Source of the DNA: Pristiophorus japonicus
Taxonomy: Eukaryota
DNA length: 64,000 bases
Direction: 5' to 3'
Assembly (NCBI RefSeq): GCF_044704955.1
Contig: NC_091984.1
Coordinates: 147,870,001-147,934,000, forward strand
A program made the translations under genes and the position numbers. Shown here piece by piece: positions 147-53,800 of the stretch. The notes under the pieces were generated by a model. It did not search any database. It was not told where the DNA came from and saw only the letters and a program-made list of their open reading frames with translations. How positions within the stretch are numbered: the stretch's first letter is position 1; every line of letters begins with the position of its first letter.

Positions 147-3100
147 CATAGAAACATAGAAAATAGGTGCAGGAGTAGGCTATTCGGCCCTTCGAGCCTG
201 CACCGTCATTCAATAAGATCATGGCTGATCATTCACTCAGTGCCCCTTTCATGCTTTCTCGCCATACCCCTTGACCCCTTAGCCATATCTAACTCCCTCT
301 TGAATATATCCAATGAACTGGCATAAACAACTCTCTGCGGTAGGGAATTCCACAGGTTAACAACTCTCTGAGTGAAGAAGTTTCTTCTCATCTCAGGCCT
401 CAATGGCCTACCCCTTATCCTGAGACTATGCCCCCTGGTTCCGGACTTCCCCAACATCGGGAACATTCTTCCTGCACCTAACCCATCCCTTCCCGTCAGA
501 ATCTTATACATTTCAATGAGTTCCCTTTGTTGGGGAGGGCATCAAACTGGAAATTAGGGGTGCATGCAATAAAGGTGCAGCAGTTATCATGAGTGACTTT
601 AATATGCATATAGATTGGGCTAACCAAACTGGAAACAATACGGTGGAGGAGGATTTCCTGGAGCACATAAGGGATGGATTTCTAGACCAATAAGTCGAGG
701 AACCAACCAGGGGGGAGGCCATCTTAGACTGGGTGTTGTGTAATGAGAGAGGATTAATTAGCAATTTCATTGTGCGAGGCCCCTTGGGGATGAGTGACCA
801 TAATATGGTGGAATTCTACATTAGGATGGAGAATGAAACGGTTAATTTAGAGACCATGGTCCAGAACTTAAAGAAGGGTAACTTTGAAGGTATGAGACGT
901 GAATTGGCTAGGATAGATTGGCGAATGATACTTAAGGGGTTGACTGTGGATGGGCAATGGCAGACATTTAGAGACCGCATGGATGAACTATAACAATTGT
1001 ACATCCCTGTCTGGCATAAAAAATAAAAAAGGGAAGGTGGCTCAACCGTGGCTATCAAGAGAAATCAGGGATAGTATTAAAGCCAAGGAAGTGACAAACA
1101 AATTGGCCAGAAATAGCAGCGAACCCAGGGACTGGGAGAAATTTAGAACTCAGCAGAGGAGGACAAAGGGTTTGATTAGGGCAGGGAAAATAGAGTACAA
1201 GAGGAAGCTTACAGGGATCATTAAGACAGATTGCAAAAGCTTCTATAGATATGTAAAGAGAAAAAGGTTAGTAAATACAAATGTAGGTCCCCTGCAGTCA
1301 GAATCAGGGGAAGTCAGAACTGGGAACAAATAAATGGCAGACTAATTGAAAAAGTACTTTGGTTCGCTATTCACTAAGGAGGACACAAACAACCTTCCGG
1401 ATATAAAAGGGGTCAGAGGGTCTAGTAAGAAGGAGGAACTGAGGGAAATCCTTATTAGTCAGGAAATTGTGTTGGGGAAATTGATGGGATTGAAGGCCGA
1501 TAAATCTCCAGGGCCTGATGGTCTGCATCCCAGAGTACTTAAGGAGGTAGCCTTGGAAATAGCGGATGCATTGACAGTCATTTTCCAACATTCCATTGAC
1601 TCTGGATCAGTTCCTTTCGAGTGGAAGGTAGCCAATGTAACCCCACTTTTAAAAAAATTAGGGAGAGAGATAACAGCGAATTATAGACCGGTCAGCCTGA
1701 CATCGGTAGTGGGTAAAATGATGGAATCAATAATTAAGGATGTCAAAGCAGTGCATTTGGAAAGAGGTGACATGATAGGTCCAAGTCAGCATGGATTTGT
1801 CAAAGGGAAATCATGCTTGACAAATCTTCTGGAATTTTTTGAGGATGTTTCCAGTAGAGTGGACAAAGGAGAACCAGTTGATGTGGTGTATTTGGACTTT
1901 CAGAAGGCTTTCGACAAGGTCCCACACAAGAGATTAATGTGCAAAGTTAAAGCACATGGGATTGGGGGTAGGGTGCTGATGTGGATTGAGAACTGGTTGG
2001 CAGACAGGAAGCAAAGAGTAGGAGTAAATGGGTACTTTTCAGAATGGCAGGCAGTGACTAGTGGGGTACCGCCAGGTTCTGTGCTGGGGCCACAGCTGTT
2101 TACATTGTACATTAATGATTTAGACGAGGGGATTAAATGTAGTATCTCCAAATTTGCGGATGACTCTAAGTTGGGTGGCAGTGTGAGCTACGAGGAGGAT
2201 GCTATAAGGTTGCAGAGTGACTTGGCTAGGTTAGGTGAGTGGGCAAATGCGTGGCAGATGAAGTATAATGTGGATAAATGTGAGGTTATCCACTTTGGTG
2301 GTAAAAACAGAGAGACAGACTATTATCTGAATGGTGACAGATTAGGAAAAGGGGAGGTGCAATGAGACCTGGGTGTCATGGTACATCAGTCATTGAAGGT
2401 TGGAATGCAGGTACAGCAGGCGGTTCAGAAAGCAAATGGCATGTTGGCCTTCATAGCGAGGGGATTTGAGTACAGGGGCAGGGAGGTGTTGCTACAGTTG
2501 TACAGGGCCTTGGTGAGGCCACACCTGGAGTATTGTGTACAGTTTTGGTCTCCTAACTTGAGGAAAGACATTCTTGCTTTTGAGGGAGTGCAGCGAAGGT
2601 TCACCAGACTGATTCCCGGGATGGCGGGACTGACATATCAAGAAAGACTGGATCAACTGGGCTTGTATTCACTGGAGTTCAGAAGAATGAGAGGGAATCT
2701 CAAAGAAACGTTTAAAATTCTGACGGTTAGACAGGTTAGATGCAGGAAGAATGTTCCCAATGTTGGGGAAGTCCAGAACCAGGGGTCACAGCCTAAGGGG
2801 TAAGCCATTTAGGACCGAGATGAGGAGAAGCTTCTTCACCCAGAAGTGGTAAACCTGTGGAATTCTCTGCCACAGAAAGTTGTTGAGGCCAATTCACTAA
2901 ATATATTCAAAAAGGAGTTAGATGTAGTCCTTGCTACTTCGGGGATCAAGGGGTTTGGTGAGAAAGCAGGAATGGGGTACTGAAGTTGCATGTTCAGTCA
3001 TGAACTCATTGAATGGCGGTGCAGGCTCGAAGGGCCGAATGGCTTACTCCTGCACCTATTTTCTATGTTTCTATGTTTCTATCCTTCTAAACTCCAGTGA

Positions 3101-4739: not shown

Positions 4740-7700
4740 TGTTATGCTCATAATAAAAGGTGAGACCGAGTACTATGTGTAATGAGCAAGTGTGACCTTA
4801 GCTCCTTTATTGTAGTTCCAGAGTGCAGCTACTTCGTGGGTGGCCTGCTTATAGACTGTACTCCCAAGGGATGCTGGGATCCCTTGGAACTCCAACAGGT
4901 CGGCACTCTGGTGGATAGGTCTGATGCAGGTTACAAGGTTACAAGGGGTTAAATACATGACATCCCTCCCCCGTGAAGTCAACAATACAATTACATGGTG
5001 TGACGATCTGGGTCTCTGCGCTCCCTTGTCGATCGTCTCGGTACAAATGTTGATATGATTGGGTTGGTCAGTTCTTCATTGGACTGTTGGGCAGCCGGCC
5101 TTGCCGAGCTGCTGGTGATGACGAGTTCTGTTTCCTGGTCAACTGTGATGTCAGTTGCCACTTGTGTGTGTGTTGGAAGGTCAAAGTTGGTGGTGTCCTC
5201 CTGAGGTTGTCCGTAGCTGTTGGTGAACCGCAGTTTAATTTGGTCCAAGTGTTTTCTGTGCATTTGTCCATTGGTCATTTTGACCTCAAACACCCTACTC
5301 CCCTCTTTGGATGTGATCGTGCCAGCAAGCCATTTGGGACCATGTCCAAAATTGAGCATAAACGCAGAATCATTGATCTCAATATCGCGTGACAAGTTTG
5401 CGAGGTCATGGTACACACTCTGTTGATGCCGCTTATTCTCCACGTGATCATGTAGATCAGGGTGGACCAGAGAGAGCCTTGTTTTAAGCGCCCTTTTCAT
5501 GAGCAGCTCGGCTGGGGGAATCCCTGTGAGTGAGTGGGGTCTGGTGCGGTAGCTGAGTAGTACTCGGGACAACCGGTTCGGCAGGGAGCCTTCCGACACG
5601 CGTTTCAAGCTTTGCTTGATGGTCTGAACTGCCCGTTCTGCCTGGCCGTTGGATGCAGGCTTCAACAGCGGAGATGTGACATGTTTGATCCTGTTGCGGG
5701 TCATGAATTCTTTGAATACGGCACGAGTGAAGCATGGCCCATTGTCGCTGACTAGGACATTGGGCAGGCTATGCATGGCAAACATAGCTCTTAGATTTTC
5801 AATGGTGGCTGTGGACGTGCTTCCAAACATTACTGCACATTCAATCCATTTTGTGTAAGCATCCACTGTCATATATGCAACCTTCATGTAACTGTAAACT
5901 TCATGTAATAACACTGCATACTGTATATTCCTAAGAAATGCACACCTTGACCACAGGGGGTGAACTTTTGGGAGACACTGCTCATCTGGTCTTCCAGGTA
6001 TATAAAGGGAGATCCCATGCAGGGTCATCACTTCTTAAAGGTTCAGGTCACAGACTGACCTTGTCTGCAGAATGTGTCTCGTGTGAATTTATAGTAGGGT
6101 GTAAGGACATTACATTTGGCGACGAGAAACGGGAATCAACGACTCACGAGAATGGCCACCGGTAGCACAGAGGAACGGTACTGTGTTGGTGAGGACTGGG
6201 ACGATTTCGTTGAGAGGCTCCAGCAGAGCTTTTTCATGAAGGTCTGGCTGGGAGATGCAGCGGCTGACAAGCGAAGGGCGCATCTACTGACCAGCTGTGG
6301 ACCTTAGACGTACGCGCTGATGAAAGACTTGCTCGCACCCGAGAAGCCGGCGGACAAAACCTTTGAAGAGCTCAGCAAACTGATCGGTGAGCACCTCAAA
6401 CCGGCGAGCAGTATACACCGACACCGAATTGATACACACTGACGTCGGGAAGGACAGAGCATACCGGACTTCGTTGCGGACCTTCGGCGCTCGGCCAGCC
6501 TCAGTAAGTTCACAGACGCCTGCAGTGGTGACATGTTAAGGGATTTCTTTATTGAGGGCATTGGTCATGTCGGGATTTTCAGACAGCTAATTGAGACCAA
6601 GGACTTGACCTTGGAAGCGGTGGCGTTCATGGCTCAGACCTTCATGGCGGGGGAGGAGGAAACCAAGACAACTCTGCTCCCAACGTGGCAATGGATCAGG
6701 GAGTTAACATTGTAAACGCGACTCAGAATTCCGCAGGCAGGCAAGGGCAATTCAACACCACTCAGGCAGCAACAGACTCTAGAGTGGGTCCTCAACAGAG
6801 AGAATGGCAGGTTGAATTGACATTTACGCCATCACGGTGGACAATGCATCACGAGATGAGGCCATTGACACCCACTAAAAGAGTGCTCAAGAGTAAACAA
6901 AGAGACAATCAGAGAGGAATGCCTGGTAACAGCCCTTTTGTTCACAACAATCTCAGCTCATGCTGGAGTGCGGGGGCAGACTTGCGGCAAAAACCTGTAG
7001 GTTTCAACAATTTATCTGTAGAAATTGTAACTTCAGTGGACATTTAGCCAGAATATGCAAGAAGCCTGCAGCGAGGCTAATTTACGAGGCAGATGAACCA
7101 GAAGAGGGGTCTGCAAGGCAGGTTGATGCTTGGGACAAAGCTCATATACCAAAACGCCAGCCATGATGATGAAAGTCCTATTAAACAGCATCCCGGTACG
7201 CATGGAGCTGGACACAGGGGCCAGCCAGCCACTTAGGAGTGTCCAACAATTCGAGAAGTTATGGCCACTCCGAGCTAGCAGACCCAAACTAGAACGCATT
7301 GACACGCAATTACGGATGTACACCAAAGAGATCATCCCAGTGCGAGGCAGTGCAATGCTGCTGGTCACACATAATGGATCAGAGAACCGGCTGCCACTCT
7401 GGAAAATGGTCCCGTGCTTTTGGGGAGGAGCTGGCTAGCCGAGATGAACTGGAAATGGGGGGATGTGCACACCATTTCATCCGTGAAGCGAAGTTCATGC
7501 TCACAGGTCCTACAGAATTTTGAGTCACGATTTCAACCCGGTGTCGGGACTTTCAAGGATACCAAAGTAGTGATACGCATCACCCCAGACGCCAGACCAG
7601 TGCACCACAAAGCCAGAGTTGTGCCGTATGTGATGCGTTAGAAAATTGAGAGCGAGTTGTACAGGTTGCTAAGAGAGGGCATAATTACGCCCGTTGAATT

Positions 7701-10700
7701 CAGTGACTGGGCAAGCCCCATCATCCCTGTCCTAAAAAAGGATGGCTCGGTCAGGATCTGTGGTGACTATAAGGCCACTATCAACCGAGTGGTTCTACAA
7801 GACCAATACCCGCTTCCGAGACGGAGGAACTTTTTGCCATTCTGGCAGGCAGCAAGATGTTCACCAAGTTGGACCTCACTTCAGCTTACATGACCTCGGA
7901 ACTGGCCGAAGAATCCAAGCTACTGACAACCATCACCACGCACAAGGGGCTGTTTGTCTACAATAGGTGTCCGTTTTGCATTCAATCAGCAGCCGCTATC
8001 TTTCAAAGGAACATGGAAAGCCTGCTCAAATCCATCCCTGGAACAATCGTATTTCATGACGACATCCTTATCACGAGTCGAGACACCGAGGAACACCTCC
8101 ACAACCTGGAGGAGGTGCTACGCCGACTGGAACGAGTAGGCCTACGACTAAAGAAGTCCAAGTGTGTGTTTTTGGCCCAGAGGTCGAGTTTTTGGGCAGG
8201 ATAGTTACTGCAGACTGGATCCGGCCTACCGAATCCAAAGCGGAGGCGATTCGTCGTGCGCCCAGGCCCGGCAACACATCGGAGTTGCGTGCACTTCTGG
8301 GACTCTTGAACTATTTCGGGAACTTACTGCCGAACTTCAGCACATTGTTGGAGCCGCTACACATACTCCTGTGTAAGGGTTGCGATTGGTTTTGGGGGTC
8401 TGTCAGGAATGGGCTTTCAATCGGGTGCGGAACCTGCTTTGTTCAAATAAGCTGTTGACCCTGTACAAACCCTGTAAGAAATTGGTTTTGACATGTGATG
8501 CACCATCCTATGGGGTTGGGTGCGTGTTGCAGCAGAGTAATGATGAGGGCCAACTCCAAGCTGTGGCTTATGCCTCCAGGCCGCTCTCCCAAGCAGAACG
8601 GGGATATGGGATGGTTGAAAAGGAAGCACTCGCATGTGTCTACGGGGTGAAAAAGATGCACCAGTACCTTTTTAGCAGAAGGTTTGAGTTAGAAGCGGAC
8701 CACAAGCCGTTAACATCCCTGTTGTCAGACAACAAAGCTGTCAATGCCAATGTGTCAGCTCGCATACAGCGATGGGCTCTCACGCTGGCTGCGTATGACT
8801 ACACCATACGGAACCGGCCAGACACCGAAAATTGCGCTGACGCGCTCTGCAGGCTTCCACTGGCCACCACAGAGGGGGCAGCAGAGCAAAGTTGCTGAGA
8901 TAGTCATGGCGCAGGCTCCCCCATCACAGCCCGCCTGATCAAAATCTGGACCAACAGAGATCCCCCTCCTATCCTTGATTAAGAAATGTGTCCTGCCTAG
9001 GGATTTGGCGCCCGCACATGGAGCATGCCCCGAGGAGGTCAGACCGTTTCACAGACGGATGGATGAACTCTCCATCCAAGCCGACAACCTACTATGGGGC
9101 AGCCGGGTAGTCATGCCCCAGAGGGGTAGGGAAGCATTCATCAGAGAACTGCACAGCGACCACCCAGGCATCGTGCTAATGAAGGCCATTGCCCGGTCAC
9201 ATGTATGGTGGCCGGGAATTGACTCGCACGTGGAACACTGTGTTCACAGGTGCACGACGTGTATCCAGCTGGGCAATGCGCCCAGGGGAGGCCCCACTCA
9301 GCCTGTGGCCCTTGCCCATCAGGCCATGGTCACGTATTCACGTAGACTACGCGGGCTCAGTCATGGGAAAAATGTTCCTCATTGTTGTTCCTCAATGGAT
9401 CGAGTGCATCATATTGAATTCGTTCACGACATCCACCACTGTGGAGAGTCTGCATGCGGTCTTAGCGACCCACGGCTTGCCGGACATCCTGGTTAGCGAC
9501 AATGGCCCGTGTTTCACTCGCTATGAATTCTGGGAATGCATGTCGCGTAATGACATCAAACATGTCAGGACACCACCGTTCAAGCCGGCTTCCAATGGCC
9601 AGGCAGAATGTGCGGTCCAAATCATAAAACAAGGCATGCTCCAGATTCAAGGACCCTCTCTTCAATGCCGCCTATCGTGCCTCCTGCTGGCCTAAAAGTC
9701 CCGACCACATTCACTCACGGGAGTCCCGCCCATGGAACTACTCATGAAACGTACACTTAAAACTCGGCTGTCCTTCATTCATCCAGTCCTGTCAGACATT
9801 GTTGAGGGCAAGCGCCAGTCCCAAAATGAGTGCCATGACCGTAACTCAAAGGGGAGATGTATAGAAATCGATGACCCTGTATTGTTCTTCATCATGCTTT
9901 GGGGCCCAAGTGCCTTGAGGGTACTGTAATTGGTAAAGAGGGGAATAGGGTCATAATGGTCAGACTTAAAAATGGACAGATATGCCACAAGCATGTGGAC
10001 CAAGTAAAAAAAAGGTTCAGCATGGACACTGAGGAACCTGAGGAAGATCATGAGATGCTGCCCACACCACTGCCAGTGAACGAGCAACAAGAACATTCAG
10101 CAGCATGCACAGTTCCTGTGGCCAGCCCGGACAAGCCGGAATCACCACAGGTGACAGAGACGCATACCAAGGCTCAACAACCAGAACCCCAACTGCGACG
10201 CTCCACGAGAGAACGTCGGCCGCCTGAAATACTTAATCTTTAACCCCATAAGACGTTGGGGTGATGATGTCATGTATGTAACCTTCATGTAACTGTGACC
10301 TTCATGTAATAACACTGCATACTATATGCACCAAAGAAATGCACACCTTGACCACAGCGGGTGAACTTGTGGGAGACACTCCTCACCTGTTCATCCAGGT
10401 ATATAAAGGGAGGTCCCACGCAGGGTCATCACTTCTTGGTCCTGTGAATAAAGGTTCAGGTCACAGAGTGACCTTGTCTGCAGAATGTGCCTCATGTGAA
10501 TATAAATAGTAGTGTGTAAGGACATTACATCCACGACAACCAAAAACATTTTGCCGAAGAATGGGCCTGCACAGTCTACATGGATCCTCGACCACAGTTT
10601 GGATAGCCAGGACCATAAACTTAGTGGTGCCTCTCTGGGTGCATTGCTCAACTGAGAGCAAGCACTGGCGTACACAAGACTCTAAATCTGAGTTAATGTC

Positions 10701-19017: not shown

Positions 19018-22000
19018 TCACAGTACCTGACCACTCCACCTTACTGCTCCGTCCCTTACTTCTCCATCCTCATCATCCCACAGTATTGGTGGGAGGCTTA
19101 CACTGATCAAACTCATTATTGTTCCTGGGACCTTGGCCCGCTTTTTACTTTTCTCTCCGGGGTTGTACAGCTTACACTGGTTTATATGGAACCATTTTTT
19201 ATGTTTTGGCAGCTGGATCGCGTACACCATAGGGCTTGCCTTGTCTGCAATGCTATATGGTCCTTTGTACAGTGGTTCAAATGCCCCTATTCTGGTATAA
19301 TTCCTGACCATTACCTGATCCCCTGCCCTCCATTCCTGTGTAACCCGGGGTTCCAGCAGCAGTTTATTCTGCTGGTGCTGCCTGCCCATATTGTTAGCTG
19401 CTTCCCAATGCAGCCCCTTCAGAGTACCATACAGATCTCTGACAAACCTGTCCCGTGTGACCTCTTTAATCTGCGTTTCAGTCAGGACTGGTTCTAGGAT
19501 ATAGGTCGGGGTCATCATTAGTCTCCCTGTCATCATCGCATGTGGGGAGTGTCCCGTACTCTTAGAGAGACTGGCTCGGTGGTTCTTCAGTATTCAGGGT
19601 AGGGTCTCATCCCATTTCTTCGGGGTATCTCCTATTTCCTTCCTAAGCCTCTCTTTTAAGGTCCGGTTTGTCCTCTACTGGATCTAACGATTGGGGGTTA
19701 TACGCCACATGCCATTTCCCCTGTATCCCTAACAGCTTTAGGGTGGCCTGCATTACTGCTCCGGTGAAATGACTCCCTTGATCTGATTCCACTATCAGGG
19801 GCAGTCCCCATCGAGAAAATACTTCTCGCACCAGAACCTTTGCTGTGACTATCGCGGTGGCCGCCCCGACATGGAAAAGCTTCAACCCATTTTGTAAAGA
19901 GATGTATTAACACCAAGCAATATTTATTGCCTCTGCCTGAGGTGGGCAGTGGCCCAATGGAATCTATCTGTATAGACTGCCATGGCCCCTCTACCCTCCT
20001 CGTGTGTCCCAACGGAGCCTTCCTCGGTGGGGGTGTGGATTGTTTGTGGCACATACCAGACAATTCTGGCAATAATCCCTGACATCACTTCTAAGCCCGG
20101 GCCACCATCCCACGGCTTCTACTTTATTCCACATTGTTTCTGGCCCTGGATGTCCAGCTCCTGGACCCACATGCACCAGCTGCAAGAATTCTTCCCTGCA
20201 TTGCCCTGGCACGATCCAACTATCTCCCTTGAACAACATTCCTTGCTTTACTGCTATGTCTGCAGCTCCCAAAGGTCCCGCTACAGACTTCCCATCTATC
20301 TTGTCCCTAATCGCTGCTCTAAGGTCTGCATCCCGTAGCTGAGCCTGTTTTAAATCAGGCGGCAATGGGACTTCTTTGGGCCCCTCTCTGCCTGTTACAG
20401 CCGTGATCTGTCCACAGTGACATGGGTCCCAAGGTGTCCCTTCTCCTGCTCCTGTTTTAGCCAGTGTGTCTGCTTTCTCATTCCCTTCCCACTTGGGCTC
20501 TGTCTTAGATTGTGCTTTGACCTTTTGGATGTAGTAATCCTTCTGGTCCCTACCCGTGACATCCAAAATGACTTATAACAATGGAACCATCACCAACCAT
20601 TTTCCATCTGAGGACTTTAACCCTCGCCTCGCCAATATGGCTAAATACTCTGTACAGGAATTAGAAATGAACATGGAGTCTGAACATATCGTACAGGGAG
20701 TTGGGAATTCGTTTGGGTGTGTGACTACATACGCTACTGCTGCTAGCTCGGTCTGCTGCGTTCTTAAAGTGTTGGGGATTTTATGGCTTTCTCTATCCCT
20801 GCCTCAGGATCGTAAATCCCACAGCCTGTCTTTCTCTCTCTGTTTATTACTGAACTGGACCCAGCTACATAGACGTCCCTGCCTGTCAGGTGTTCTCCTG
20901 CTCAGAATCCCACATCTACATCCCACACTCCTTCCACTGAATACACATGAGCTGTCCCCGGATAAACCAGGCTCGGGGCTAGCTTTGGTTCTCCTGGCCT
21001 CTCGACCTTCAGGTCTAACTGAGTAAGCAACAATGTCCAGCGGGCAATCCTGTTACTGCTCACTGTCCCATCTTTCATTCTACCATCCAGTAACATTTGT
21101 GTTGTGGTGTGACAGGTCAGTAAAGTTACTGTAGCTAACCCTGTGAGCGACCGAAAATGCTTCACTGCCCAACATATTACTAACAGATGTCATTTGCAAT
21201 TCGAAAAGCTCTTTTCTACTTCGGTGAGAACTCGGGAGACGTAGGCCACCGGTCTCAGCTTGCCGTGTCGCTCCTGGAGTAACACTGCACTCAAACTGTC
21301 CCCAGTCATTGCTACCTCCAGACTAAAGTCCTGGTCCCCATTTACTGCTCCCGACGCTGGTGCTGTCTGTAACACCTCTTTTAACCAAATGAAAGTTTCC
21401 TGACAACTCTCACTCCATTCCCACTCTACTCCTTTCCTAAGAAGCCTCAACAAAGGAGCTGCCATGGTTACATATCCCTCTATGAATTCCCTGCAGTAAC
21501 CCGTTATTCCCAGGAAAGACCTTACTCCAGACACGTCCTTAGGAACAGGTAGTTCCTGGACTGACTTTCTCTTAGCTCCATCTATGGCCCTTTCTCCTGC
21601 CCTAATGGTCAAACCTAGAAACTGCACCTCCTCTTTGCCTATTTGAGCTTTCTGGGGATTTACTTTAAAACCTGCTTCTTTCAACAAATGCAGTAACTCA
21701 CGCAATAATGGCCTGTGGTCCTCCGCACTTTCGGAGAATAACAACAGGTCGTCCACATATTGGACCAACCGGTCTGGCTGACTAAAACCGGTTAATGCCT
21801 CGGCCATACTTTGGTGAAAGTTCGAGGGACTGTTGTGAAACCCTTGTGGAAGACATGTCCACATATACTGCTGACCTTTAAAGGTAAAGGTAGATTTATA
21901 CTGGTCCTCCCGTCTCAGGGGAATGGACCAAAACCCGTTTGAAATGTCCAGCACTGTGAAAGTTGTTGTGGCCGCAGGGATACTCCCGATCAAATCCGCT

Positions 22001-22826
22001 ACCACTGCTACCGTGGGCGCACAGGCTGGAATATTTTTATTCAGGATTCGATCATCTACCGTGGCCCTCCATGAGTTATCGGGCTTCTTTACTGGCCATA
22101 GGGGTGAGTTTACATGTGTGGCTATGGTCCTCAACACACCTTGATCCACCAGGGAATTTATAGCAGTTTCCAAATCCCTTTCTGCTTCCCGGGGAAAATT
22201 ATACTGTTTTTGGGGTCGTGTCATCGAATCCCCGTCTATCTTCACCTCTACCCCAGATACTCTCCCGCAATCGTGCTTGTGCATTGCAAACGCATCCATA
22301 TTCTACCGTACATACCTTGATACCGGGCCGGAATGTTATCGACTAATCGTTCTCAGTCATAACTCTCTTTCGGCTTCATCGTGCAGGTGCTACCTTTGTC
22401 TGCACTGTCCCTGGGAATCACTACGATCTCTCCCATCTTATCTGCATCAACTGCCCCCCATAGACAATTGTTTTCCATATCCACTGTGGTGTGGTGTGCC
22501 AACATGTAGTCGGCCCCGAGAACTCCCGAACCGGGCTGTTCCCACCTCATTAAAATGCCCTCCCATTTCATTATGTTCGGCCCTAACTCTACGGTTAAGG
22601 GTTTCCACACTGCCCCAGCCTGCTCATTACCCGTCAAACCCACCAGTGTAAATGGTACTCCGCTCGACCACGGGGAAGTGGTCGGATTCGGTGAGTGGAC
22701 AACCGTGCTAGAGGCTCCTGTATCTACTAGATCCCTTCCCCTAACTGTTTCCACCTTCACATCCACACATGACCTGCCCCACCCATCATATATGAGCAGA
22801 CACAGGTATTCTGGCTGGGCACACCG
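19018..22826 (-). pseudogene. pol: pro-pol: aspartic protease, RT, tether + RNase H, integrase with GPY/F tail
   Basis: LVDTGAS. LDISNGFWSIP, LPQGFHNSP and YVDDLL lie in a 369-aa ORF (21190-22299). GNEKADTLAK (RNase H). HHCC zinc finger, [18 protein letters not shown] and YKGPY (integrase). Confidence 0.9.
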
Positions 22827-24499: not shown

Positions 24500-25170
24500 T
24501 GGCTGAGAAATTCTCCGTGACTACCTTGGTGTCCCCTGAGACCACCTCGCAGTGACCTGCGGTTCCTGTTACTCTGGCTTCTCTCTGTGGCTACCCGAGT
24601 CGACCCGAGACTACTCCAGCATGTCAGAGACTTTCTCTCCTGGTCCCCTAGTCACCCTTGAGATCACCTTTGGCCTCCCTGAGACGACCCCGTGACAATA
24701 TTGGCTTTTCTCTGTGACTACTCCAGTCAACCGAGATTATTCCAGCCTATCCGAGACTGTTTCTCTCCTCAGGCTGCCCTGGCTGCCCGTGAGATTATCC
24801 CTGGCCTCCCTGACACCCTGCGCAGACTACCTGCGATTACTTCTCCCGGTTGCTGCCCTAGTCAGCCGGAGCTCTTCGGCTACTCCTGGTCCCCCTTGAG
24901 ATTCCCTTGGTCTCCCTGAGACCCCTGTGCAGACTACCTGCGGCTTTCTCGGTGGCTACACTCGTCAACCCGGGATTACTCCAGCCTACCCAAGACTGAT
25001 CCTTCCTCTGCTGGCTGCCCTAGCTGCCCTTGAGAGTACAATGGTCTCCCTCAGACCACTGAGCAACTACCTGAGACTTCTTTTCTCAGTGGCTACCCTA
25101 ATCGACGGAGACGACTCAAGCCTATCAGACCCTGTTACTCTCCTGGTCGCCCTAGCCGCCCTTGAGAAGA
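24500..25170. repeat. Degenerate ~110-135-bp tandem repeats (~5 units) in the retroviral 5' leader
   Basis: Recurring blocks TCTCTGTGGCTAC..GATTACTCCAGCCTA..GCTGCCCTTGAGA..CTCCCTGAGAC..GACTACCTG. Confidence 0.65.
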
Positions 25171-27499
25171 TCCTTTTCGACCACCTTAGCTGACCTTAGA
25201 CATAACCAAGCCTCCCTCGGGGTTTTTGCTCTGGTATGTGTCCGTGATACTATTCCCAAAGCCGAGGTCCTGCCGCGGTCACCAATTTCTGTAGGTAGTT
25301 TGTTTTTCACTCTGCTCTGATTCTTAGACCTGGGAACTTGTAGTGGGAAAGGACAACATGTGGCACAACATTTAGGCTTCACCCAGTGTCAGTTTTATTA
25401 TGCACAAAAACCGTCGAAAACTACAGGACTAGACTTCTGAGAGAAATCGACTGAAACCATACAATTGCCCTTCCTGGCTGTAGCTATTGTAGGTTCGTGG
25501 TCATTGGTTGCGTGACCGGTTGGTTCTTCTTCTGGCCGTTCTCTGCAGTGCTGTTACTTCTGTGTACGTTCCGTACAACATGTTCCTCCGTCCATTCATC
25601 TGTTCGTGCTTTCGACCTGTGTCCATCTGTACAGGTGTCCTTCTACTTCTTCTGTGTGCTTCTTCTTCCGTCTGTTCCTGTCCTTGTTCCATCTCCTGCT
25701 GAGCTGCTTCTAGCTCACATATTTATATCCAGGTTATGACTGATCTCCCGCCACTGCGCTTTCTGATAAAGTGTTTGCATCAATACATTGTTTTGTGGTC
25801 CACTTGGTTGATTGATTACAATAATGAACTCGTCTGTTTTCCCATTTGCACACTGAGTCTGCAAGGCTCAAGTTGATTTCTCATCTTAACACCTCATCCT
25901 AAAAAATGTGCAACTGTTGTGGTTCCTTTGTTGTCAGGTCCTTTTACAGACTTGGGGCTAGAACCTCCTCTTTTATTGCCTGTTTAATGCCCACTTAACA
26001 CCCATTTTACCACTGAAATGACATATAACGCCCAGATATCACCCATTTTGGTACAAAATGGAAACTGACGGGCTTTTTTAGGAGACTTGTCGCCGAGCGT
26101 TACTTTCCCAATGGGCTTAACGCAGAGAATAAATATTATCGCCCACCTACTTTTTTGGGGCGGAATCAGCAGAATGGGCAAATTCAGCGCCCATAGTATC
26201 ACCCAGCGTTACTTTCCTCATGGAATTAATGCCGAGATTCAACATTAACACCCGGCGACTGTTTTTTGTCATGAACAGCATATTTACCCAAAGTAACGGC
26301 CATGGAGATCACCCACCGTCAATTTCACCACCTCGTACACATATCGCCCACAATATCGCTCGCTCAAAAAACCACCCACAAAAAGTGGAACTAACCAGAA
26401 CGAATCACAGCGTTATGGACGCCGTGATGTAGATCACATGTCGCGTCCTTTCACCTGGGCGGAGTTCGGATGTACTCTGCAGGTCGTTGGAGTTGATTTG
26501 AATATCTCTGAAAACATCTTGACCACACTGTGACCAATTGGAATTGAAGAGGTGTGCTCGTCGGGACATTCTTTGCTTGTGTGCAATCGGTGACAGACAC
26601 AGAGCTACTGCAATGGGGCCTGTCCTTTCTCACCCTCTCTTGGTGACCAAATATATGCAGCAGACTCAACATCGCTGAAGGAACGCGACATTGCATTATG
26701 TGCCCAATGTACGAAATAACAGTCAGATGAGGAGGACCAGACATTACACCCCCCGCAAATACAAGGAGAAGCATTCTTACCTCGACTTGCCTGACACCAC
26801 CTGCCTTCGGAGACTGCGCTTCCACAAAGAGGTTATCACTGAGGTATGCCAGCTGATAAGGGCAGGCCTACAGCCTACCAGCACCATCAGAACTGCACTG
26901 TCCGTCGAGGTCGAAGTCACCACGCCACTATCGTTCTATGCTTCGGGTTCTTTTCAGGCCACAGCTGGCGACATTTGCAGACTTTCTCAGCATGCCACAC
27001 ATTGCTGCATTAGACAGGTCACTGAAGCCCTGTACGCACACAGGAGGGACTTGATCAGCTTCCCTATGACCAGGGAGGCACAGAGTGAGAGGGTTCGAGG
27101 TTTCTCCAGAATTGCAAACTTCCCCAAGATGCAGGGAGCAATAGACTGTACGCACATCGCGATGTGGGCACCTTTTCAGGATGCCGCAAGGGATTCCACT
27201 CCCTGAATGTCCAGCTGGTTGTCGACCACCAGCAAATTATACTGGCAGTGAATGCTCAATTTCTGGGCAGCATCCATGCTGCACACATCCTGCGTGAGAG
27301 CATTGTATCTGACTTGTTTAACATTGAGCCACAAGGTCAATGCTGGAAACTTGGGGCCAAAGGATATGGCCTTGCCACCTGGCTGATGACCCCATGTGTG
27401 ACACCCACACTGAGGCCGAGAGGTGATACAACGAGAGCCACAGAGCAACTCGCAATATTATGGAGAAAACCATTGGAGTGCTGAAGCAGCGCTTTAGAT

Positions 27500-27876
27500 T
27501 TTTTAATTTTTTTAAATTTTTTTTTAAAATTTATTCGTTGCCAATCTTTCCAATTCTTTGTCAAATCACAAACGCCAGAGGTCACCTTGCACACGCCAAG
27601 GATCACTCTGCGCCAATGCTCTTAGCCAAAAGGCCTAGAGCCACTGCACCATTCCTGGAAGTACTGCAATACCAGGTTCGTGCCATGGAGGTGGATGGGT
27701 CAGGCCCCCCACACACCTCCGTGGAGGTGGATGGGTCAAGCCACCCCACCCACCTCCTGTTTCCAAAAAGCATAGGAGAATCACCTTCCTGATCCAGGGA
27801 GAACCACGTTGGGGTCATGGTTACTCCCCTGTCAGGTCAGTTACGCATGATCTTAGCCAAAAGGCCGAGAAGCAAT
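27500..27876 (-). mobile_element. U2/U1 snRNA-derived SINE-like element, copy 1 (most diverged)
   Basis: Starts ATTGCTTCTCGGCCTTTTGGCTAAGATCA (U2 5' end, 1 mismatch). Contains a U1-like arm and the U2 3' stem-loops. The poly(A) tail is interrupted. Confidence 0.88.
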
Positions 27877-28241
27877 TTTTTTTTTTTTTTTTGGAAATTC
27901 GTAGCCAATCGTTCCAATTCTTTGTCAAATCACAAACGCCAGAGGTCACCTTGCACACGCCAAGGATCACTCTGCACCAATGCTCTTAGCCAAAAGGCCT
28001 AGAGCCACTGCACCGTTCCTGGAAGTACTGCAATACCAGGTTCGTGCCATGGAGGTGGATGGGTCAGGTCCCCCACACACCTCCGTGGAGGTGGATGGGT
28101 CAAGCCACCCCACCCACCTCCTGTTTCCAAAAAAGCAAGCATATACCTTCCTGATCAAGGGAGAACCACCCGGAGGTCATGGTGGCCACTCCCCTGTCAG
28201 GTCAGTTACGCATGATCTTAGCCAAAAGGCCGAGAAGCGAT
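27877..28241 (-). mobile_element. U2/U1 snRNA-derived SINE-like element, copy 2
   Basis: Exact U2 nt 1-29. U1-like ACTGACCTGACAGGGGAG..CCATGA..GGTGGTTCTCCC. U2 SL-IV CCTGGTATTGCAGTACTTCCAGGAACGGTGCA. Pure poly(A). Confidence 0.9.
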
Positions 28242-28601
28242 TTTTTTTTTTTTTTTTTTTTAAATTCGTAGCCAATCTTTCCAATTCTTTGTCAAATCAC
28301 AAACGCCAGAGGTCACCTTGCACACGCCAAGGATCACTCTGCGCCAATGCTCTTAGCCAAAAGGCCTAGAGCCACTGCACTGTTCCTGGAAGTACTGCAA
28401 TACCAGGTTCGTGCCATGGAGGTGGATGGGTCAGGTCCCCCACACACCTCCGTGGAGGTGGATGGGTCAAGCCACCCCACCCACCTCCTGTTTCCAAAAA
28501 AGCAAGCATATACCTTCCTGATCCAGGGAGAACCACCCGGAGGTCATGGTGGCTGGTCAGGTCAGTTACGCATGATCTTAGCCAAAAGGCCGAGAAGCGA
28601 T
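28242..28601 (-). mobile_element. U2/U1 snRNA-derived SINE-like element, copy 3
   Basis: Nearly identical to copy 2, with a small deletion in the U1 arm. Pure poly(A) of ~20 nt. Confidence 0.9.
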
Positions 28602-31144
28602 GCCTGGACCACTCAGGTGGTGAGCTCCAATACCACCCTGAGCAGGTAGCTCAATTCGTGGTGATGTGCTCCATGCTGCACAACTTGGCTATCAGGAGGG
28701 GACAAGAATTGCCTGATGAGCCTGACAGTCCACCTCACCAGAGAGAGGAAGAGGAGGATGAGGAGGCGGACGCCGACATCGGGTCAGACAATCAGGCTGA
28801 TGCTGAAGCCACGCCCCCGCCCTTCTGTAGATCACATGAAAGGGCCCATGGTGGCATGATAGCTGCAAGCGCCTTACGCCAGGAGCTCATCAATGATCGC
28901 TTTGCCTGAAAGAACGTTGGTGTTATTTCCACAGCTGACACACTGCTGGGTGTGCAGGTCATAAATTAATCATGGGCATCACCTTGGTGACCGTTAAAGT
29001 TTACTTTGACTGAAGTTGAGTGTGATTATATCCTTTGATGTTAACAAATCACCAGCGTGTAACGGTACAGCTATCTGAGCCAATGTGCTGCAAGGTATTG
29101 TTCAATAAAAAACATTTAAACCAAACATTAGTCTGAAATCATCAGTATTTCTGTACAAACCAACCCTTCCCCCCACCCACCCCGCTTCTCCTCCCCAACT
29201 CTACCCCTTCCCCTTCCCCCTCTGACTCCAAGCCGCCTGACCGCGGAGGTTCTCAGGCGATGCTTCACTGGGAGGTGGGTGGTGATGGACAAAGCACTGC
29301 TTGGACGGATATGGGGGAAGATGGTCCCAAGGTGGGAACGTGCTTCGAGGCAGAAGCGAGATGTTGCTCCTGGCTCTCATGTGTGGTTGGCAATGGGGTT
29401 GCGTCACCTTGGGGTGTAGTGCGGCACTCCGGGATCACTGGGAGCCCTCTGCCACCAGTGTTCCTGGCTACCAGCTCCAGGGCCTCCTCCATCCCTTACA
29501 TTTTATATGTTATTTGTGGGACAAAAACTCGATGCCAACTATGTTCTTGGTGCTTAGTGCGCTTTTTGCTGCTGGTGAATCTCCCTCGTGCCTCCCACAA
29601 CAGCCAAACAAACGCACACCACAGCCACACACGCTTTCAGTGCCTCTGAGCTCCCTCTCTCTCTGTCTCCTCTTCTGCGTATGTCATGGTTACCCTTGAC
29701 CTCCAGAATCGAGGGAATGGACCATTGCCATGCTGTTGCTAAGGACGACCACACTTTACAACAGAAGGTCAGAAAAATTTAACGCTGCCGCCCATTTGAA
29801 CTCGTTCGCGGTAACGCCCATTTTCAAAGATGTAAACTAAGTGTTTTGAGAATGGGCGAGAAGCCGGCGATCTGAAAATCCTTTTTTACCACCCACGCCG
29901 GAAATCACGCCCATTTTTGGGCGCTAAGCTCAAAAGTGGAGGTTCTAGCCCTTGGTGTCTCCAGTGAGCTTGTGTTCCCCACCCTGGTCAATCAAGTTCA
30001 TGGCATCACGTAACAACTCCATTCTTGTTATGCATGGAGTCAGTTTTGGTCCCTGACCAAAGAATGTCCTTAATTGTCCAGCTTCATTCCAAAAGCTGGT
30101 ATTAAATTCCAAAAGCTTGTATTAAGCAATTTTTACTTCATGGTCTCCTTCTGTGCTTTTCTGAAGATTGGTAACCTTACACACAACACCTCACCTCTCC
30201 CACCCCCAAAACCGCCCCTCGCCCAACCCCAACACCGCCCCCAACTCCCACCCCCAACACAACTCCTCTCCATCCCCCAACACCGCCCCTCTCCCACCTC
30301 CAACACCCACCTTAAACTGATACACACAGCAGGCAGGACTTATATGGGCACATGACCCCCCGCGGGACACATCACCACTGAGGGCTCATGTCCCCTGGCC
30401 TCACAATGGAAACCATGGCAACACAGAAGCCACAGGGGTGGACCAATCACAGCAAAGTGCAACAGACTGTGCATATGTGCCTGAGAGAGCAACAAGGAGA
30501 GAGCTTCAATCTATTTAACCCTTCGATCCCTGGCTGCCGTCTGAACACTAGGCCCGAGTTGGCAGTGGTGGTGACTACATTATTCCCGCTGTTATTCTGC
30601 CCCCTGCTCATTCATCTCAACCCCTGTGTTAATGTTTCTCTGTTCAATGGTACTGCTCCCCACGGCAAATCCAACCAGTGAGATTTCTCAGCTGGGTGTG
30701 AAACATGGAGAAGCAGAGATGGGCATGGACTGTGTGGGGGCACTAAAGGACCCACTGGCTCCGACCAATAATAAAACAGTCGGTAAGGACACGGTGAAAA
30801 GTGGGGGATGGGACCAGATGATGGACCTGGGCAAGTCCGACAAGGAGGCTGTCCTGCCGGCCAGAGCAATGGTGAAATACACTGGCCTCAGCCTGCCTGG
30901 CATTGTGGAAGGGCAGGCAGCTCCGATCCTTACCGTCCCAGACTGTCAGCCAATCACCGTGGCTTCCTCCTTCGGAGAGTTGTTCAAATCTCCACAGGTT
31001 TCACAGCTGCAGCTCACAGACACGCTGGTGAGCAGATTGTTGGGGTGTTTGCTCTACACTTGTCCAGTTGCTGTGTGTCACGGGCCTGGGCAACTTTACA
31101 ATTGGAGCCCATTACTGGTCTCATAAAGTGACGGGCACATTGAT

Positions 31145-39912: not shown

Positions 39913-42900
39913 GTACACAGGAAGATTTACGAGGATGTTGCCTGGACTGGAAAATTTTAGCGATGAGGAAAGATTGGATAGGCTGGGGTTGTTTTCTTTG
40001 GAATAGAGGAGTCTGAGGGGAGACCTTATTGAGCTGTATAATATTATGAGGGGCCGAGATAGGGTGGATAGGACGGACCTATTTCCTTAAGCAGATTGGC
40101 CAACAACCAGGACATAGATTTTAAAGTAATTGCTCGGAGGTTTAGAGGGGATTTGAGGGGAAATATCTTCACCCAGATGGGGTGGGGGTCTGGAACTCAC
40201 TGACTGAAAGGGTGGTAGAGGCAGAAACTCTCATCACTTTTAAAAATTACTTGGATGTACACTTGAAGTGCTGTAACCTACAGGGCTATGGACCAAGAGC
40301 TGAAAAGTGATTAGGCTGGATAGATCTTTGCCGGCCAGTGCAGACACGAATGGCCTCCTTTCATGCTGTAAATTTCTCTGATTCTATGAAGCTCCCAGAC
40401 TGCAATGAGATCATGACCAGATCATCGGCTTTAACTATGTTAGTTGTGGAATAAATATTGGCCAGGACACTGGGAAGAACCCCCATGCCCTTCCAATAAT
40501 GATTATGAGATCTTTCATGTTCACTTGAGAGGGCAGATGGGATTTCGGTTTAACATCTCATCTGAAAGACGGCACCTCTGACAGAGGGAGGATATGTTTG
40601 AAGGATCATCAAATGAGGCCATATGGTTTAAACTGATGAACAGAAAAGGGGCGATCACACTGCTGGGAGTGTACTATAGACCCCTAAACAGTCAGAGGGA
40701 GATAGAAGAGAAAATATGTTGGCAATTTGCTGAGAAGTGCAAAAACAATCGGGCAGCAATAGTCGGGGATTTCAACTCCCCTCACATTAACTGGGTTGGA
40801 ATCAGTGTCAAAGGTATAGAGGGTGCAGAATTCTTCAAATGCATTCAGGAGAACTTTTACAGCTAATACGTAGCAAGCCCAGCAAGGGAGGGGGCGGTTC
40901 TGGGCTTAGTTTTCGGGAATGAAGCTGGGCAGGTGGAAGGGAGATCAGTGAGAGAGCATTGTGGTGCTCGTGATCATAATTCTGTTAGATTTAGTGTAGT
41001 TATGGAAAAGGACAAAGGTAGAGCAGGAATAAAGGTTCTCAATTGGGGAAAGGCCAATTTTGCTAAGCTGAGAGGTGATTTAGCAAAAGTGGGCTGGAAA
41101 CAGCTACTTGAAGGTAAATCAGTGTCAGAGCAGTGGGAGGTATTCAAGGGGGAGATAGTGAGGGTTCAGAGCAAGTATGTTCCCACAAAGGAAAAGGGTG
41201 GCACTCCCAAATCTAGAGCCCCCTGGATGGCAAAGGGCATACAGGGTAGGATAAGGCAAAAAAGGGAAGCTTATGTCAGATACCCAGAGCTAAATACTGC
41301 AGAAAGCCCAGAGGTGTATAGAAAGTGCAGGGGTGAAATTAAAAAGGAAATTCGAAATGCAAAGAGAGGGCATGAAAAAATACTGGCAAGTAAAATCAAG
41401 GAATACTCAAAGATGTTTTATAAATACATAAAGAGCAAGAGGATAACTAAAGAAAGAGTTGGGCCTATTGGAGACCAAAAAGGTACCCTGTGTGTGGAGG
41501 CGGAAGACGGGGGAATGGTTCTTAATGAATATTTTGCATCTGTCTTCACAGAAGAGAGGGACGATGCAGACATTGCAATTAAGGAGGACAAGTGTGAAAT
41601 ATTAGATGAGATAAACATAGTGAGAGAAGAAGTATTAAGGAGCTTAGCATCTTTGATCGTAGAAAAATCACCAGGCCCAGATGAAATGTATCCCAGGCTT
41701 TTAAGAGAAGCAAGCGGGGATATAGCAGAGGCTCTGACCATCATTTTCCAATCTACTCTGGCTACAAGTGTGGTGCCGGAGGACTGGAGGACTGCTAACG
41801 TGTACCTTTGTTTGAAAAGTGAGAAAGGGATAGACCGAGTAATTACAGGCCAGTCAGCCGAACCTTGGTGGAAGGAAAATTATTGGAAACAATAATTGTC
41901 ATATAGAAAGGGACATATTAATCAAGGACAGTCAGCATGGATTTATTCAGGGAAGGTTGTGCCTGACTTACTTGATTTAATTTTTTGCGGAGATAACATG
42001 GAGAGTCGATGAGTTTTGCATCTTTGATGTCGTACACATGGACTTTTGCAAGGTTTTTGGTGAGGTCTCACATGGCAGAAAAGTAAAATGCCCAGGGATC
42101 CAAGGGAAAGTGGCAAGTTGGATCCAAAATTGGCTCAGTGGCAGGAAGCAAAGTGTAATGATCAACGGGTGTTTTTGTGAATGGAAGGCTGTTTCATGTG
42201 GGGTTTCAAGCCAGGTTTGCTGATAATACAAAGATGGGAGGAAAAGCAATGTGTGATGAGGATACAAAAAACCTGCAAAAAGACATTGACAGGCAAAGTG
42301 AGTGGGCAAAAATTTGGCAGATCGAGTATAATGTTGGAAAGTGTGAGGTTATGCACATTGGCAGAAAAAAATCAAAGAGCAAGTTATTATTCTAATGGAG
42401 AAAAATTGCAAAGTGCTGTCGTACAGCGGGACCTGTGGGTACTTGTGCATAAAACACAAAAGGATAGTATGCAGGTACAGCAAGTGATCAGGAAGGCCAA
42501 TGGAATCTTGGCCATTATTGCAATGGGATGGAGTATAAAAGCAGGGAAGTCTTGTTACAGTTATACAGGGTATTGGTGAGGCCATAGCTGGAATACTGCG
42601 TGCAGTTTTGGCTTCAATATTTAAGAAAGGATAGACTTGCTTTGGAGGCAGTTCAGAGAAGGTTCACTAGGTTGATTCCAGAGATGAGGGGGGTTGTCTT
42701 TTGAAGAAAAGTTGAGTAGGTTAGGCCTCGACTCATTGGAATTCAGAAGAATGAGAGGTGATCTTATCGAAACATGTAAGATTATGAGGAGCCATGCAAG
42801 GTGGATGCAGAGAGGATGTTTCCACTGATAAGGGAGACTAGAACTAGGGAGCTTAACCTTAGAATAAGTGGACGCCCATTTAAAACTGAGATGAGGAGGA

Positions 42901-50860: not shown

Positions 50861-53800
50861 CTCTCTGGCTACAGGTGTGGTGCCGGAGGACTGGAGGACT
50901 GCTAATGTTGTACCTTTGTTTAAAAAGGGAGAAAGGGATAGACCGAGTAATTACAGGCCAGTCAGCCTAACCTCAGTGGTGGGGAAATTATTGGAAAAAA
51001 TACTGAGGGACAGGATAAATCTTCATTTAACAAGACACGGATTAATCAAGGACAGTCAGCATGAATTTGTTAAGGGAAGATCGTGTCTGAATAAAATGAA
51101 TTTTTTGAGGAGGTAACCAGGAGGATTGATGAGGGCAGTGCATATGATGTAGTGTGTATGGATTTTAACAAGGCTTTTGATAAGGTCCCACATGGAAGAC
51201 TGCTCATGAAAGTAAAAGCCCATGGGTTTCAGGGCAAAGTGGCAAGTTGGATCCAAAATTGGTTCAAAGGCAGGAAGCAAAGGGTAATAGTTAACGGGTG
51301 TTTTTGTGACTGGAAGGCTGTTTCCAGTGGGGTTCCACAGGGCTCAGTACTAGGTCCCTTGCTTTTTGTGGTATATATCAATGACTTGGACTTGAATGTA
51401 AGGGGCATGATCAAGAATTTTGCAATTGAAACTAAAATTGGCCGTGTGGTTGATAATGAAGAAGAAAGCTGTAGACTGCAGGAAGATATCAATGAAATGG
51501 TCAGGTGGGCAGAACAGTGGCAAATGGAATTCAATCCGGAGTAGTGTGAGGTAATGCATTTGGGGAGGGCTAACAAGGCAAGGGAATACACATTAATTGT
51601 TACGACACTGAAAATTGCAGAGAAACAAAGGGACCTTGGAGTACAGGTCCACAGATTCCTGATGGTAGCAGGTCAGGAAGGTAAAATGGTTAAGAAGGCA
51701 TATGGAATACTTGCCTTTATTAGACGAGGCATGAATACAAGAGCAAGGACAATTTGCTTGAACTGTATAAAACACTGGTTAGGCCACAGCAGGAGTACTG
51801 CGTGCAGTTCTGGTCACCACATTACATTACAAGAAAGATGTGATTGCACTGGAAAGGGTGCAGAGGATGCAGAGGTTACAGGGCTACGGACAGAGAGCTG
51901 GAAAGTGGGATGAGGCTGGATAGCTCTTGGTTGGCTGGCATAGGCTGAAACGGATTCCCTCCGTGCTGTGAATTTCTATGATTCTATCATGGACAGATGC
52001 ATCTACAACAGGCAGATTGTTGAGGACGAGGTCAAGTAGGTTTTTCCCTCGTGTTGGTTCTCTCCCCACCTGCTCTGGGCCCAGTCTGGCAGATATGTCA
52101 TAGAATCATAGAATCACAGGGGTTTACAGCACAGAAGGAGGCCGTTTCAGACCATCATATCCGCGCCACCCAACAAAGAGCTATCCAGCCTAATCCCACT
52201 TTCCAGCTCTGGGTCCACAGCCCTGCAGGTTACGGAACTTCAAGTGCACATCCAAGTACTTTTTAAATGTGGTGAGGGTTTCTGCCTCTACTAATGAAGG
52301 ACCTAATATTCCAGGTCCTGACCTACATCCTGAAGGGTGGAAGATGCCTGTGCGTGGATTTTTTTTAACATGTGGTGACCGTTGCACACCAGCCTTCACA
52401 CGGGCTCGACAGAGCTAGGTCTTGGTCCAGTGGCAAGGGTTAACCAGGACGACTGGAGACCTGCTCTGCTGTACGGACCGAGTGTGCACACATATCGCAG
52501 TGTGGGCTGGCCCGTGCTACCCCTGGGCCCCTGGCCACACCCCCACAACCCTCTGGGTGAAGAAATTTCCCCTCAAGTCTCCTCTAATCACTTTAAATCT
52601 ATGCCCCCTGATTGTTGAGCTGGAGGAGGAAATTCAGAAACTCCAACCCTGAGTTCAAGCACAGACCATTGCTTCCTTGAGTATGAATTGAAGCATAATT
52701 AAAGTTACATGCTCTGTTGAAGATTTTGTACATGGGAATAAAACTTATTTTATTGTAGGAGAGAGCAATTTCAGGTAATATTTGTGTGTCTGGCTAACAG
52801 AAATAGGTCCATCCTACCAACTCTTTCCAGGCCCCTCATAATTTTATACACCTCAATCAGGTCTCCCCTCAGCCTCCTCTGTCCAAAGAAAACAAACCCA
52901 GCCTATCCCATCGTTCCTCATAGTTAAAATTCTCCAGTCCAGGCAACATCCTCATATATCCTCTGTACCCTCGGTTTAAAGTCTCGTCCGAAGAAATCGT
53001 ACTGTTAATTAAACACTGAAGGCAAGAACTTTGAAGTGTTGGGAATACTCAATGTATCAAGACAGGAACATTGTAAACATTGATTGTGACATCATGCACT
53101 CACAACCTCCCCATAGTATGCACAATGTGAGCACCAGACCCGAGGACAGAACCCAAGGAGATGTGCCCAGCACCAATCCAGGACAATGATCAATGTAAAG
53201 CCAAAGCTGAATGTTATCAGGGCTGCTTTGCCGATGATTGCCCTGTGATCGCGGGCACCAGCAGCACACACACCTCTTGTGGGTACAGTCATATCGTGGT
53301 TATGTTGCTGCAGAGCACTCCACAGGCCTGCACTAATAATCCCCACAATCTCACCATGGCCCTTTGACTATTTCAATTCAGCTCTTTTTTAAATGCTGGA
53401 AATAAAAAGCTGGTCTCAGTAAAAGTGACCACAAAGCTGTCAAATTGTCACAAAAGCCCAATTGGTTCAGTGACATCCTTTAGGGAAGGAAACCTGCCGT
53501 CCTTGCCACATAAAAGGTTACTGCCCAAGATAAGAGCTCACGGGGTTGTGGGTAATATATTAGCATGGATAGAGGATTGGCTAACTAACAGCAAACAGAG
53601 AGTCGGGATAAATGGGTCATTTTCAGGTCGGCAAATTGTAATTAGTGGGGTGCCGCAGGGATCAGTGCTGGGGCCTCAACTATTTACAACCTATATTAAT
53701 GACTTGAATGAAGGGACCGAGTGTAATGTAACCAAATTTGCTGATGTACAAAGATAGGTGAGAAAGCAAGTTGTGAGGAAGACACAAAGATTCTGCAAAT

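Follow-up and report, generated by a model that had tools for sequence, protein, structure and literature searches.

The window analysed here, a 64,000-nt stretch of the genome of the shark Pristiophorus japonicus, contains an array of closely similar units arranged head-to-tail on the minus strand, which Tandem Repeats Finder (TRF) describes as a repeat of period 367 with 2.9 copies and 94% matches over 27533-28601. The array is bordered on both sides by parts of a degenerate Harbinger (HARBI1-like) transposase gene on the opposite strand. The principal features are as follows.

26691..27498, plus strand: left part of the Harbinger (HARBI1-like) transposase relic (Pfam DDE_Tnp_4), with ..LKQRFR as its last intact codons
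27499..28601, minus strand: whole array, three putative retroposon units head-to-tail
28242..28601, minus strand: copy 1, 360 nt (Rfam U2, 66.0 bits at 28370-28601)
27877..28241, minus strand: copy 2, 365 nt (Rfam U2, 59.9 bits at 28003-28241)
27499..27876, minus strand: copy 3, 378 nt (Rfam U2, 65.2 bits at 27639-27876; Rfam U1, 20.4 bits at 27724-27843)
28601..28798, plus strand: right part of the Harbinger transposase, starting CLDHSGG...

The left part of the transposase matches Pfam DDE_Tnp_4 at 27164-27484 (7e-11) and again at 27427-27498 (3e-3), with frameshifts and one stop further upstream, and its translation ends in ..GVLKQRFR at 27498. Translation resumes beyond the array at 28601/28602 with CLDHSGGELQY.., and this right-hand piece has 106 relatives at E<=1e-3 among 1.84 billion representatives. 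Among the matches listed, nine of 11 carry CLD, CLH or CLS directly after ..RFR, the other two reading ..RFC at that point. Since these relatives run from ..LKQRFR straight into CLD.., the array is a precise insertion, one that falls exactly between neighbouring codons (..LKQRFR / CLD..) in a dead transposase and lies antisense to its open reading frame. Target bases were neither gained nor lost at the insertion, bar one ambiguous A/T, as the T at 28601 may just as well be the complement of A1 of U2. No target-site duplication was found at the ends of the array or between its units, so that it is the A-tails and the split reading frame that speak for retroposition. The nicked strand at the point of insertion reads ..CTTTAGA|T. 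The 3' flank within the Harbinger gene was also considered as a target held in common with U2 from nt 39 onward, and this candidate was rejected, as the agreement of the first three bases (TCT) alone is too little.

Over 26300-28800 on the plus strand the Harbinger relic is interrupted by two or more frameshifts and by a stop codon; an acidic C-terminal tail, EEEEDEEADAD, continues in frame past the array. Just upstream of the relic, direct-repeat families at 24534-25167, spaced about 103-241 nt from start to start and mostly 127-143 nt, suggest a satellite or minisatellite with a repeat of about 134 nt, present in some five units. A low-complexity C/A-rich tract with a period of 23-25 nt lies at 30179-30330. 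The window is dense in transposons, with retroelement pol fragments, mostly of LTR type, at 1346-2365 (+), 4991-6031 (-), 8380-9496 (+) and 19991-22299 (-), among which RVT_1 with RNase H, an integrase zinc-binding domain and an integrase core are represented; the tail of the array units occurs in none of these fragments. Nor did the window contain any LINE sharing the tail or head of the units.

Further copies of the unit were sought with blastn, which found none in the 64-kb window beyond the array itself. A protein route to other copies, with the antisense ORF of the unit and the Harbinger ORF as queries, returned nothing, and there was likewise no match to the exact pattern of the U2/U1 junction in metagenomes, in exact-pattern scans of genome and viral contig collections, or in a search of a phage collection. 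A single match to the tail pattern was rejected as chance, being an AT-rich stretch devoid of U2. The coding capacity of the unit is confined to short chance ORFs that have no relatives.

Composition of the repeat unit

Read from 5' to 3', each unit opens with U2 (nt 1-35), to which U1 (nt 3-48) is joined. From about nt 70 the sequence is again that of U2 and runs to its 3' end, with stem-loop III in two versions, and another piece of the U2 5' part then precedes the tail and poly(A). The parts are given here for copy 2, with the evidence for each in brackets where it was recorded.

28206..28241, minus strand: first U2 piece, nt 1 to about 35 (cmscan alignment and printed U2)
28159..28206, minus strand: putative U1-derived block, U1 nt 3-48, 5' end and stem-loop I (equivalents on the minus strand at 28526-28566 in copy 1 and 27797-27841 in copy 3)
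28123..28158, minus strand: resumption of U2 at about nt 70, through the Sm-like CTTTTTTGG (cmscan)
28047..28122, minus strand: U2 stem-loop III in two tandem versions (TRF and fold)
28003..28046, minus strand: U2 stem-loop IV and U2 3' end (cmscan alignment)
27967..28002, minus strand: second, diverged U2 5' piece (blastn self-match and fold)
27893..27966, minus strand: unique tail, about 74 nt

All three units match model positions 1-192 of the Rfam U2 family (RF00004), with the scores listed above, against a gathering score of 46 bits. The original prediction, made from the sequence of this locus, had read an exact copy of U2 nt 1-29 in every unit, which holds for copies 1 and 2 and fails in copy 3 by one CpG-to-TpG change. 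Its further U2 assignments are borne out: the Sm-site-like T-run is seen as T5-6GG in the alignment, stem-loop III is doubled in tandem (period 36, 2.0 copies, 88-91% by TRF), stem-loop IV is present and includes in copy 2 a 33-nt run identical to mammalian U2 (bioRxiv 10.1101/2021.08.01.454689), and a second copy of stem-loop I is identical at 22/24 positions to unit positions 7-30. This second U2 5' piece comprises at least nt 7-30 and plausibly extends from nt 4 to about nt 40. Two features of a functional U2, the branch-point-pairing site and stem-loops IIa/IIb, are not found in the units, in that GUAGUA, the branch-point-pairing sequence, has been lost from the first U2 piece, model positions 33-45 of U2 show a 3-nt deletion together with mismatches, and large insertions replace stems IIa/IIb in the cmscan alignment. 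Sub-threshold matches to the Rfam family Prion_pknot (31 bits, threshold 39), at 27683-27734, 28047-28098 and 28414-28465 on the plus strand, are a compositional look-alike created by GGTGG repeats, the antisense of the doubled stem-loop III.

Where U2 stem-loops IIa/IIb belong stands a block of 48 nt (copy 2), which the original prediction assigned to the 5' arm and stem-loop I of U1. The Rfam U1 model scores in copy 3 alone, where it reaches 20.4 bits (gathering score 69.5) with a high posterior over U1 1-48; the E-value, counted over all 4227 families, is 0.0013 when 151 nt are searched and 0.012 for a search of 1.3 kb. Copy 3 has the block closest to U1 among the three units, and a by-eye count against the printed vertebrate U1 gives agreement at 37/48 positions (77%) with one gap (bioRxiv 10.1101/2021.08.01.454689); the agreement of the U1-like block with U2 nt 36-83, the segment that it replaces, is 8/48. 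A scripted local alignment of the block to the Rfam pan-eukaryote U1 consensus, which is a poor proxy for vertebrate U1, was not significant when compared with shuffles (z 0.9-1.8). A hairpin resembling U1 stem-loop I folds in copies 2 and 3, with upper stems that differ between the two; copy 2 carries a 5-nt insertion in the block and keeps the fold, and in copy 1 a 10-nt deletion breaks the hairpin, half of which is lost. The assignment thus stands as regards E-value (about 0.001-0.01) and identity to U1 nt 1-48, and falls short as regards the covariance score, which lies under the Rfam gathering score. Despite this failure at the Rfam cut-off, a U1 origin of the block appears well supported.

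The tail has no match among Rfam families or elsewhere in the window. Copy 1 closes with 21 nt of pure A (28261-28241) and copy 2 with an A-run of 17 nt (27892-27876), the last A of each doubling as A1 of the following copy, and copy 3 ends in an A/T-rich run of 37 nt (27535-27499). Each A-run that closes one unit therefore abuts U2 nt 1-2 of the next with zero spacer, and units 2 and 3 are immediately preceded by the tail and A-run of the previous unit. In this region the results agree with expectations raised beforehand, namely that the units would end in a unique tail and poly(A), that they would have no tRNA-type part, and that they would have no snRNA 3' box. ARAGORN reported no tRNA, the Rfam tRNA, 7SL and 5S models gave nothing even at E<=10, and the head with internal pol III boxes that characterises tRNA-, 7SL- and 5S-headed SINEs is not found; the 3' box consensus has no match inside the units. 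Oligo-T occurs within the body, as T5-6 at the Sm site and as T4 in both copies of stem-loop I, and these runs would stop pol III. Elsewhere in the window, the exact snRNA 3' box consensus is found at 41810-41824 and 50918-50932 on the plus strand, where about 0.3 matches are expected by chance, two or more occurred in 5/100 shuffles, and Rfam places no snRNA alongside; these two matches are probably due to chance.

Relation to known retroposons

To our knowledge, SINEs headed by snRNA are the rarest class of SINE. The SINEU elements of crocodilians are short retroposons that end in poly(A), have 5' parts derived from U1 or U2, and grew by repeated 5' additions (Kojima 2015, PMC4494074). They contain internal oligo-T, their promoter is not known, they often stand in tandem, and they prefer a Mariner transposon as their target; probably they are moved by Tx1 LINEs that share both the target and the head with them (PMC4494074). 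Several of the characters that define SINEU are found again in the shark units, which have an snRNA-derived 5' part, are short (<500 bp), non-coding and 3' polyadenylated, are built as a mosaic, and combine internal oligo-T with the lack of an internal pol III promoter. We consider it highly probable that the array consists of three copies of a non-coding, non-autonomous retroposon family of SINEU type, cleanly inserted into the Harbinger relic. The original prediction of a SINEU-like family is supported in part, the architecture fitting the definition of Kojima (2015); Tx1 LINEs are candidate partners, and the family may be independent of the crocodilian ones.

The likeness extends to particulars. 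With crocodilian SINEU-1, -2 and -3 the shark units share a U1/U2 body built stepwise at the 5' end of a short, non-coding, poly(A)-ended element, block replacement within the U1 part, oligo-T and no pol III promoter, tandem copies, and landing in a DNA transposon. Block replacement is also what sets the SINEU-2 subfamilies of crocodilians apart, and the internal oligo-T of the crocodilian elements led Kojima to the same argument against pol III (PMC4494074). In contrast to the crocodilian elements, the shark units belong to another host lineage, possess a nearly complete U2 scaffold (model 1-192) in which U1 nt 3-48 replaces IIa/IIb, and have a doubled stem-loop III and a second U2 5' piece before the tail. 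The targets differ as well, a Harbinger ORF here and Mariner-N4 in crocodilians, where one Tx1 family favours Harbinger elements (PMC4494074). Whereas tandem copies of crocodilian SINEU-3 sandwich a target duplication (PMC4494074), no such duplication lies between the units described here. The published literature searched, which was the basis of this comparison, contained no SINEU outside crocodilians.

Three further systems bear comparison. U2 genes are the target of Keno LINEs (Tx1 clade) and of Utopia LINEs, whose cut falls between nt 38 and 39 (PMC4640811), and LINEs inserted there are co-transcribed with the upstream part of their target, which would supply a U2 head (PMC4494074, PMC4640811). 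The first U2 piece of the shark unit ends at about nt 35, near this cut site; however, the unit has no ORF, the array lies outside a U2 gene, and the U2/U1 junction is about 3 nt off the site. The L1-made chimeric snRNA retrocopies (U6/L1, and U1 or U2 plus Alu), as portrayed in PMC4494074, resemble the shark unit in that an snRNA is joined by template switching at the 5' end of another retroposed RNA, but they are described there as independent single events with target duplications of 7-20 bp, whereas here one fixed mosaic recurs with variants. Genes and pseudogenes of U2 itself (RF00004) are approached in that the units pass the gathering score and agree exactly with vertebrate U2 over the 5' 29 nt and over stem-loop IV. 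They differ from the shark units, which have other sequence in place of the branch-point site and IIa/IIb, carry some 130 nt of additional sequence with poly(A) on the 3' side, and leave no space for a promoter.

Differences between the units and alternative explanations

Overall the units are 92-96% similar, and outside a variable block the similarity rises to 98-99%. Outside alignment columns 47-112 any two units diverge by 1.3-2.1%, mostly at CpG sites, and inside these columns, which hold the U1 loop and the IIb-like region, the divergence is 16-32% (Fisher p 5e-6 to 1e-11). Such concentration of the differences in a block indicates that the units stem from different source variants and not from local duplication; the source variants behind the three units number at least two, and probably three. 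That the sources differed implies other copies in the genome, which argues indirectly against a one-off locus.

It is with this pattern that the reading of the array as a one-off event has to be confronted, in which a chimeric snRNA retrocopy, like the U6/L1 and U2/Alu products of mammalian L1, would have been triplicated later by unequal crossing-over, with no mobile family behind it. The 64-kb window contains no other copy, the units are 92-96% alike, no target duplication separates them, and chimeric snRNA retrocopies are known, as PMC4494074 records, all of which would agree with such a history. However, the differences are about 15-fold concentrated in one 64-nt block, of which each unit has its own version, and uniform drift after a local duplication would not yield this pattern; the A-runs, moreover, are unlike in length and purity. 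We regard a one-off retrocopy as very improbable. Scarcely credible at all is a tandem cluster of working variant snRNA genes, whose product would be a U2-like RNA with a U1 arm, transcribed and assembled in an Sm particle. Genuine U2 genes are often arranged in tandem arrays, and the arrangement seen here is similar; the units also exceed the Rfam U2 threshold and retain the Sm-like site and stem-loops I, III and IV, with a hairpin like U1 stem-loop I in two of them. However, the next unit begins directly after each A-run, so that a PSE/DSE promoter would have no place, the 3' box consensus is absent, the units lack both stem-loops IIa/IIb and the sequence that pairs with the branch point, copy 1 is missing half of the U1 hairpin, and the array sits within a dead transposase ORF.

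A different question is which enzyme moved the element. The same element could have been mobilised by an LINE of L1 or CR1 type without sequence-specific targeting, in which case the U1 and U2 pieces would be mere products of template switching, with no connection to Tx1 or Keno. The plain poly(A) end is of the kind used by L1-type enzymes, the window is free of Tx1 LINEs, and the nicked strand (..CTTTAGA|T) is loosely T-rich. Nonetheless, the first U2 piece ends no more than 3 nt from the Keno/Utopia cut site, an L1-style target-site duplication is absent, and targets and heads are common to crocodilian SINEU and Tx1 LINEs (PMC4494074), so that an L1- or CR1-type mover appears improbable to us.

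A model for the mobilization of the family

The model proposed for the SINEU-type family starts from a near full-length U2 scaffold, in which the 5' end and stem-loop I of U1 would have taken the place of IIa/IIb and stem-loop III would have been doubled. This scaffold may have been joined to an older module made up of a short U2 5' piece, the unique tail and poly(A). The mosaic could have grown through repeated 5' additions, the order of which we infer, by template switching onto U1/U2 RNAs and/or by insertion at the Keno/Utopia cut site in U2 and transcription together with U2 nt 1-38. Because the body contains pol III terminators, the RNA copy would be a transcript of RNA polymerase II, started at a promoter outside the element, and the element RNA would be reverse-transcribed at the nicked target by a LINE enzyme. 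The likely candidate for this partner would be a LINE of Tx1/Keno type.

The array itself may have arisen in either of two ways. Serial insertion at one spot is one of these, and copy 3 would then be the oldest, having the most decayed A-run and 4 private changes, compared with 1-2 in the others. Alternatively, template jumping could have produced the array in a single event, in which the enzyme, having reached the 5' end of one element RNA, would continue on the A-tail of another, and this would account for there being no duplicated target between the units.

A tentative extension of the model, which we hold to be rather unlikely, is that each copy would bring with it a landing pad for the next. 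The 5' end of U2 in a copy already in place (A|TCGCTTC) is similar to the 3' side of the Keno/Utopia cut in U2 (A|TCTGTTC) and to the Harbinger site (A|TCTAAAG). A LINE endonuclease directed at U2 would then cut again at the head of each resident copy, so that arrays would grow head-to-tail, and any master copy that had settled at nt 38/39 of a genuine U2 gene would be served by the pol II promoter of that snRNA gene. If true, this reading would answer how SINEU gets transcribed.

The SINEU design, published for crocodilians only, is extended by this array to another vertebrate lineage, and a young family in so distant a lineage would demonstrate that elements of this sort arise time and again through Tx1/Keno-type LINEs. 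To what is known of these elements the locus adds an insertion site that is clean at codon level, the absence of duplication between units, and unit differences that are distributed block-wise. The shark family may supply younger copies than those of crocodilians for studying transcription without a pol III promoter and the choice of target, and the array, with its three versions of the U1 block, provides a compact test case for distinguishing serial self-targeted insertion from template jumping.
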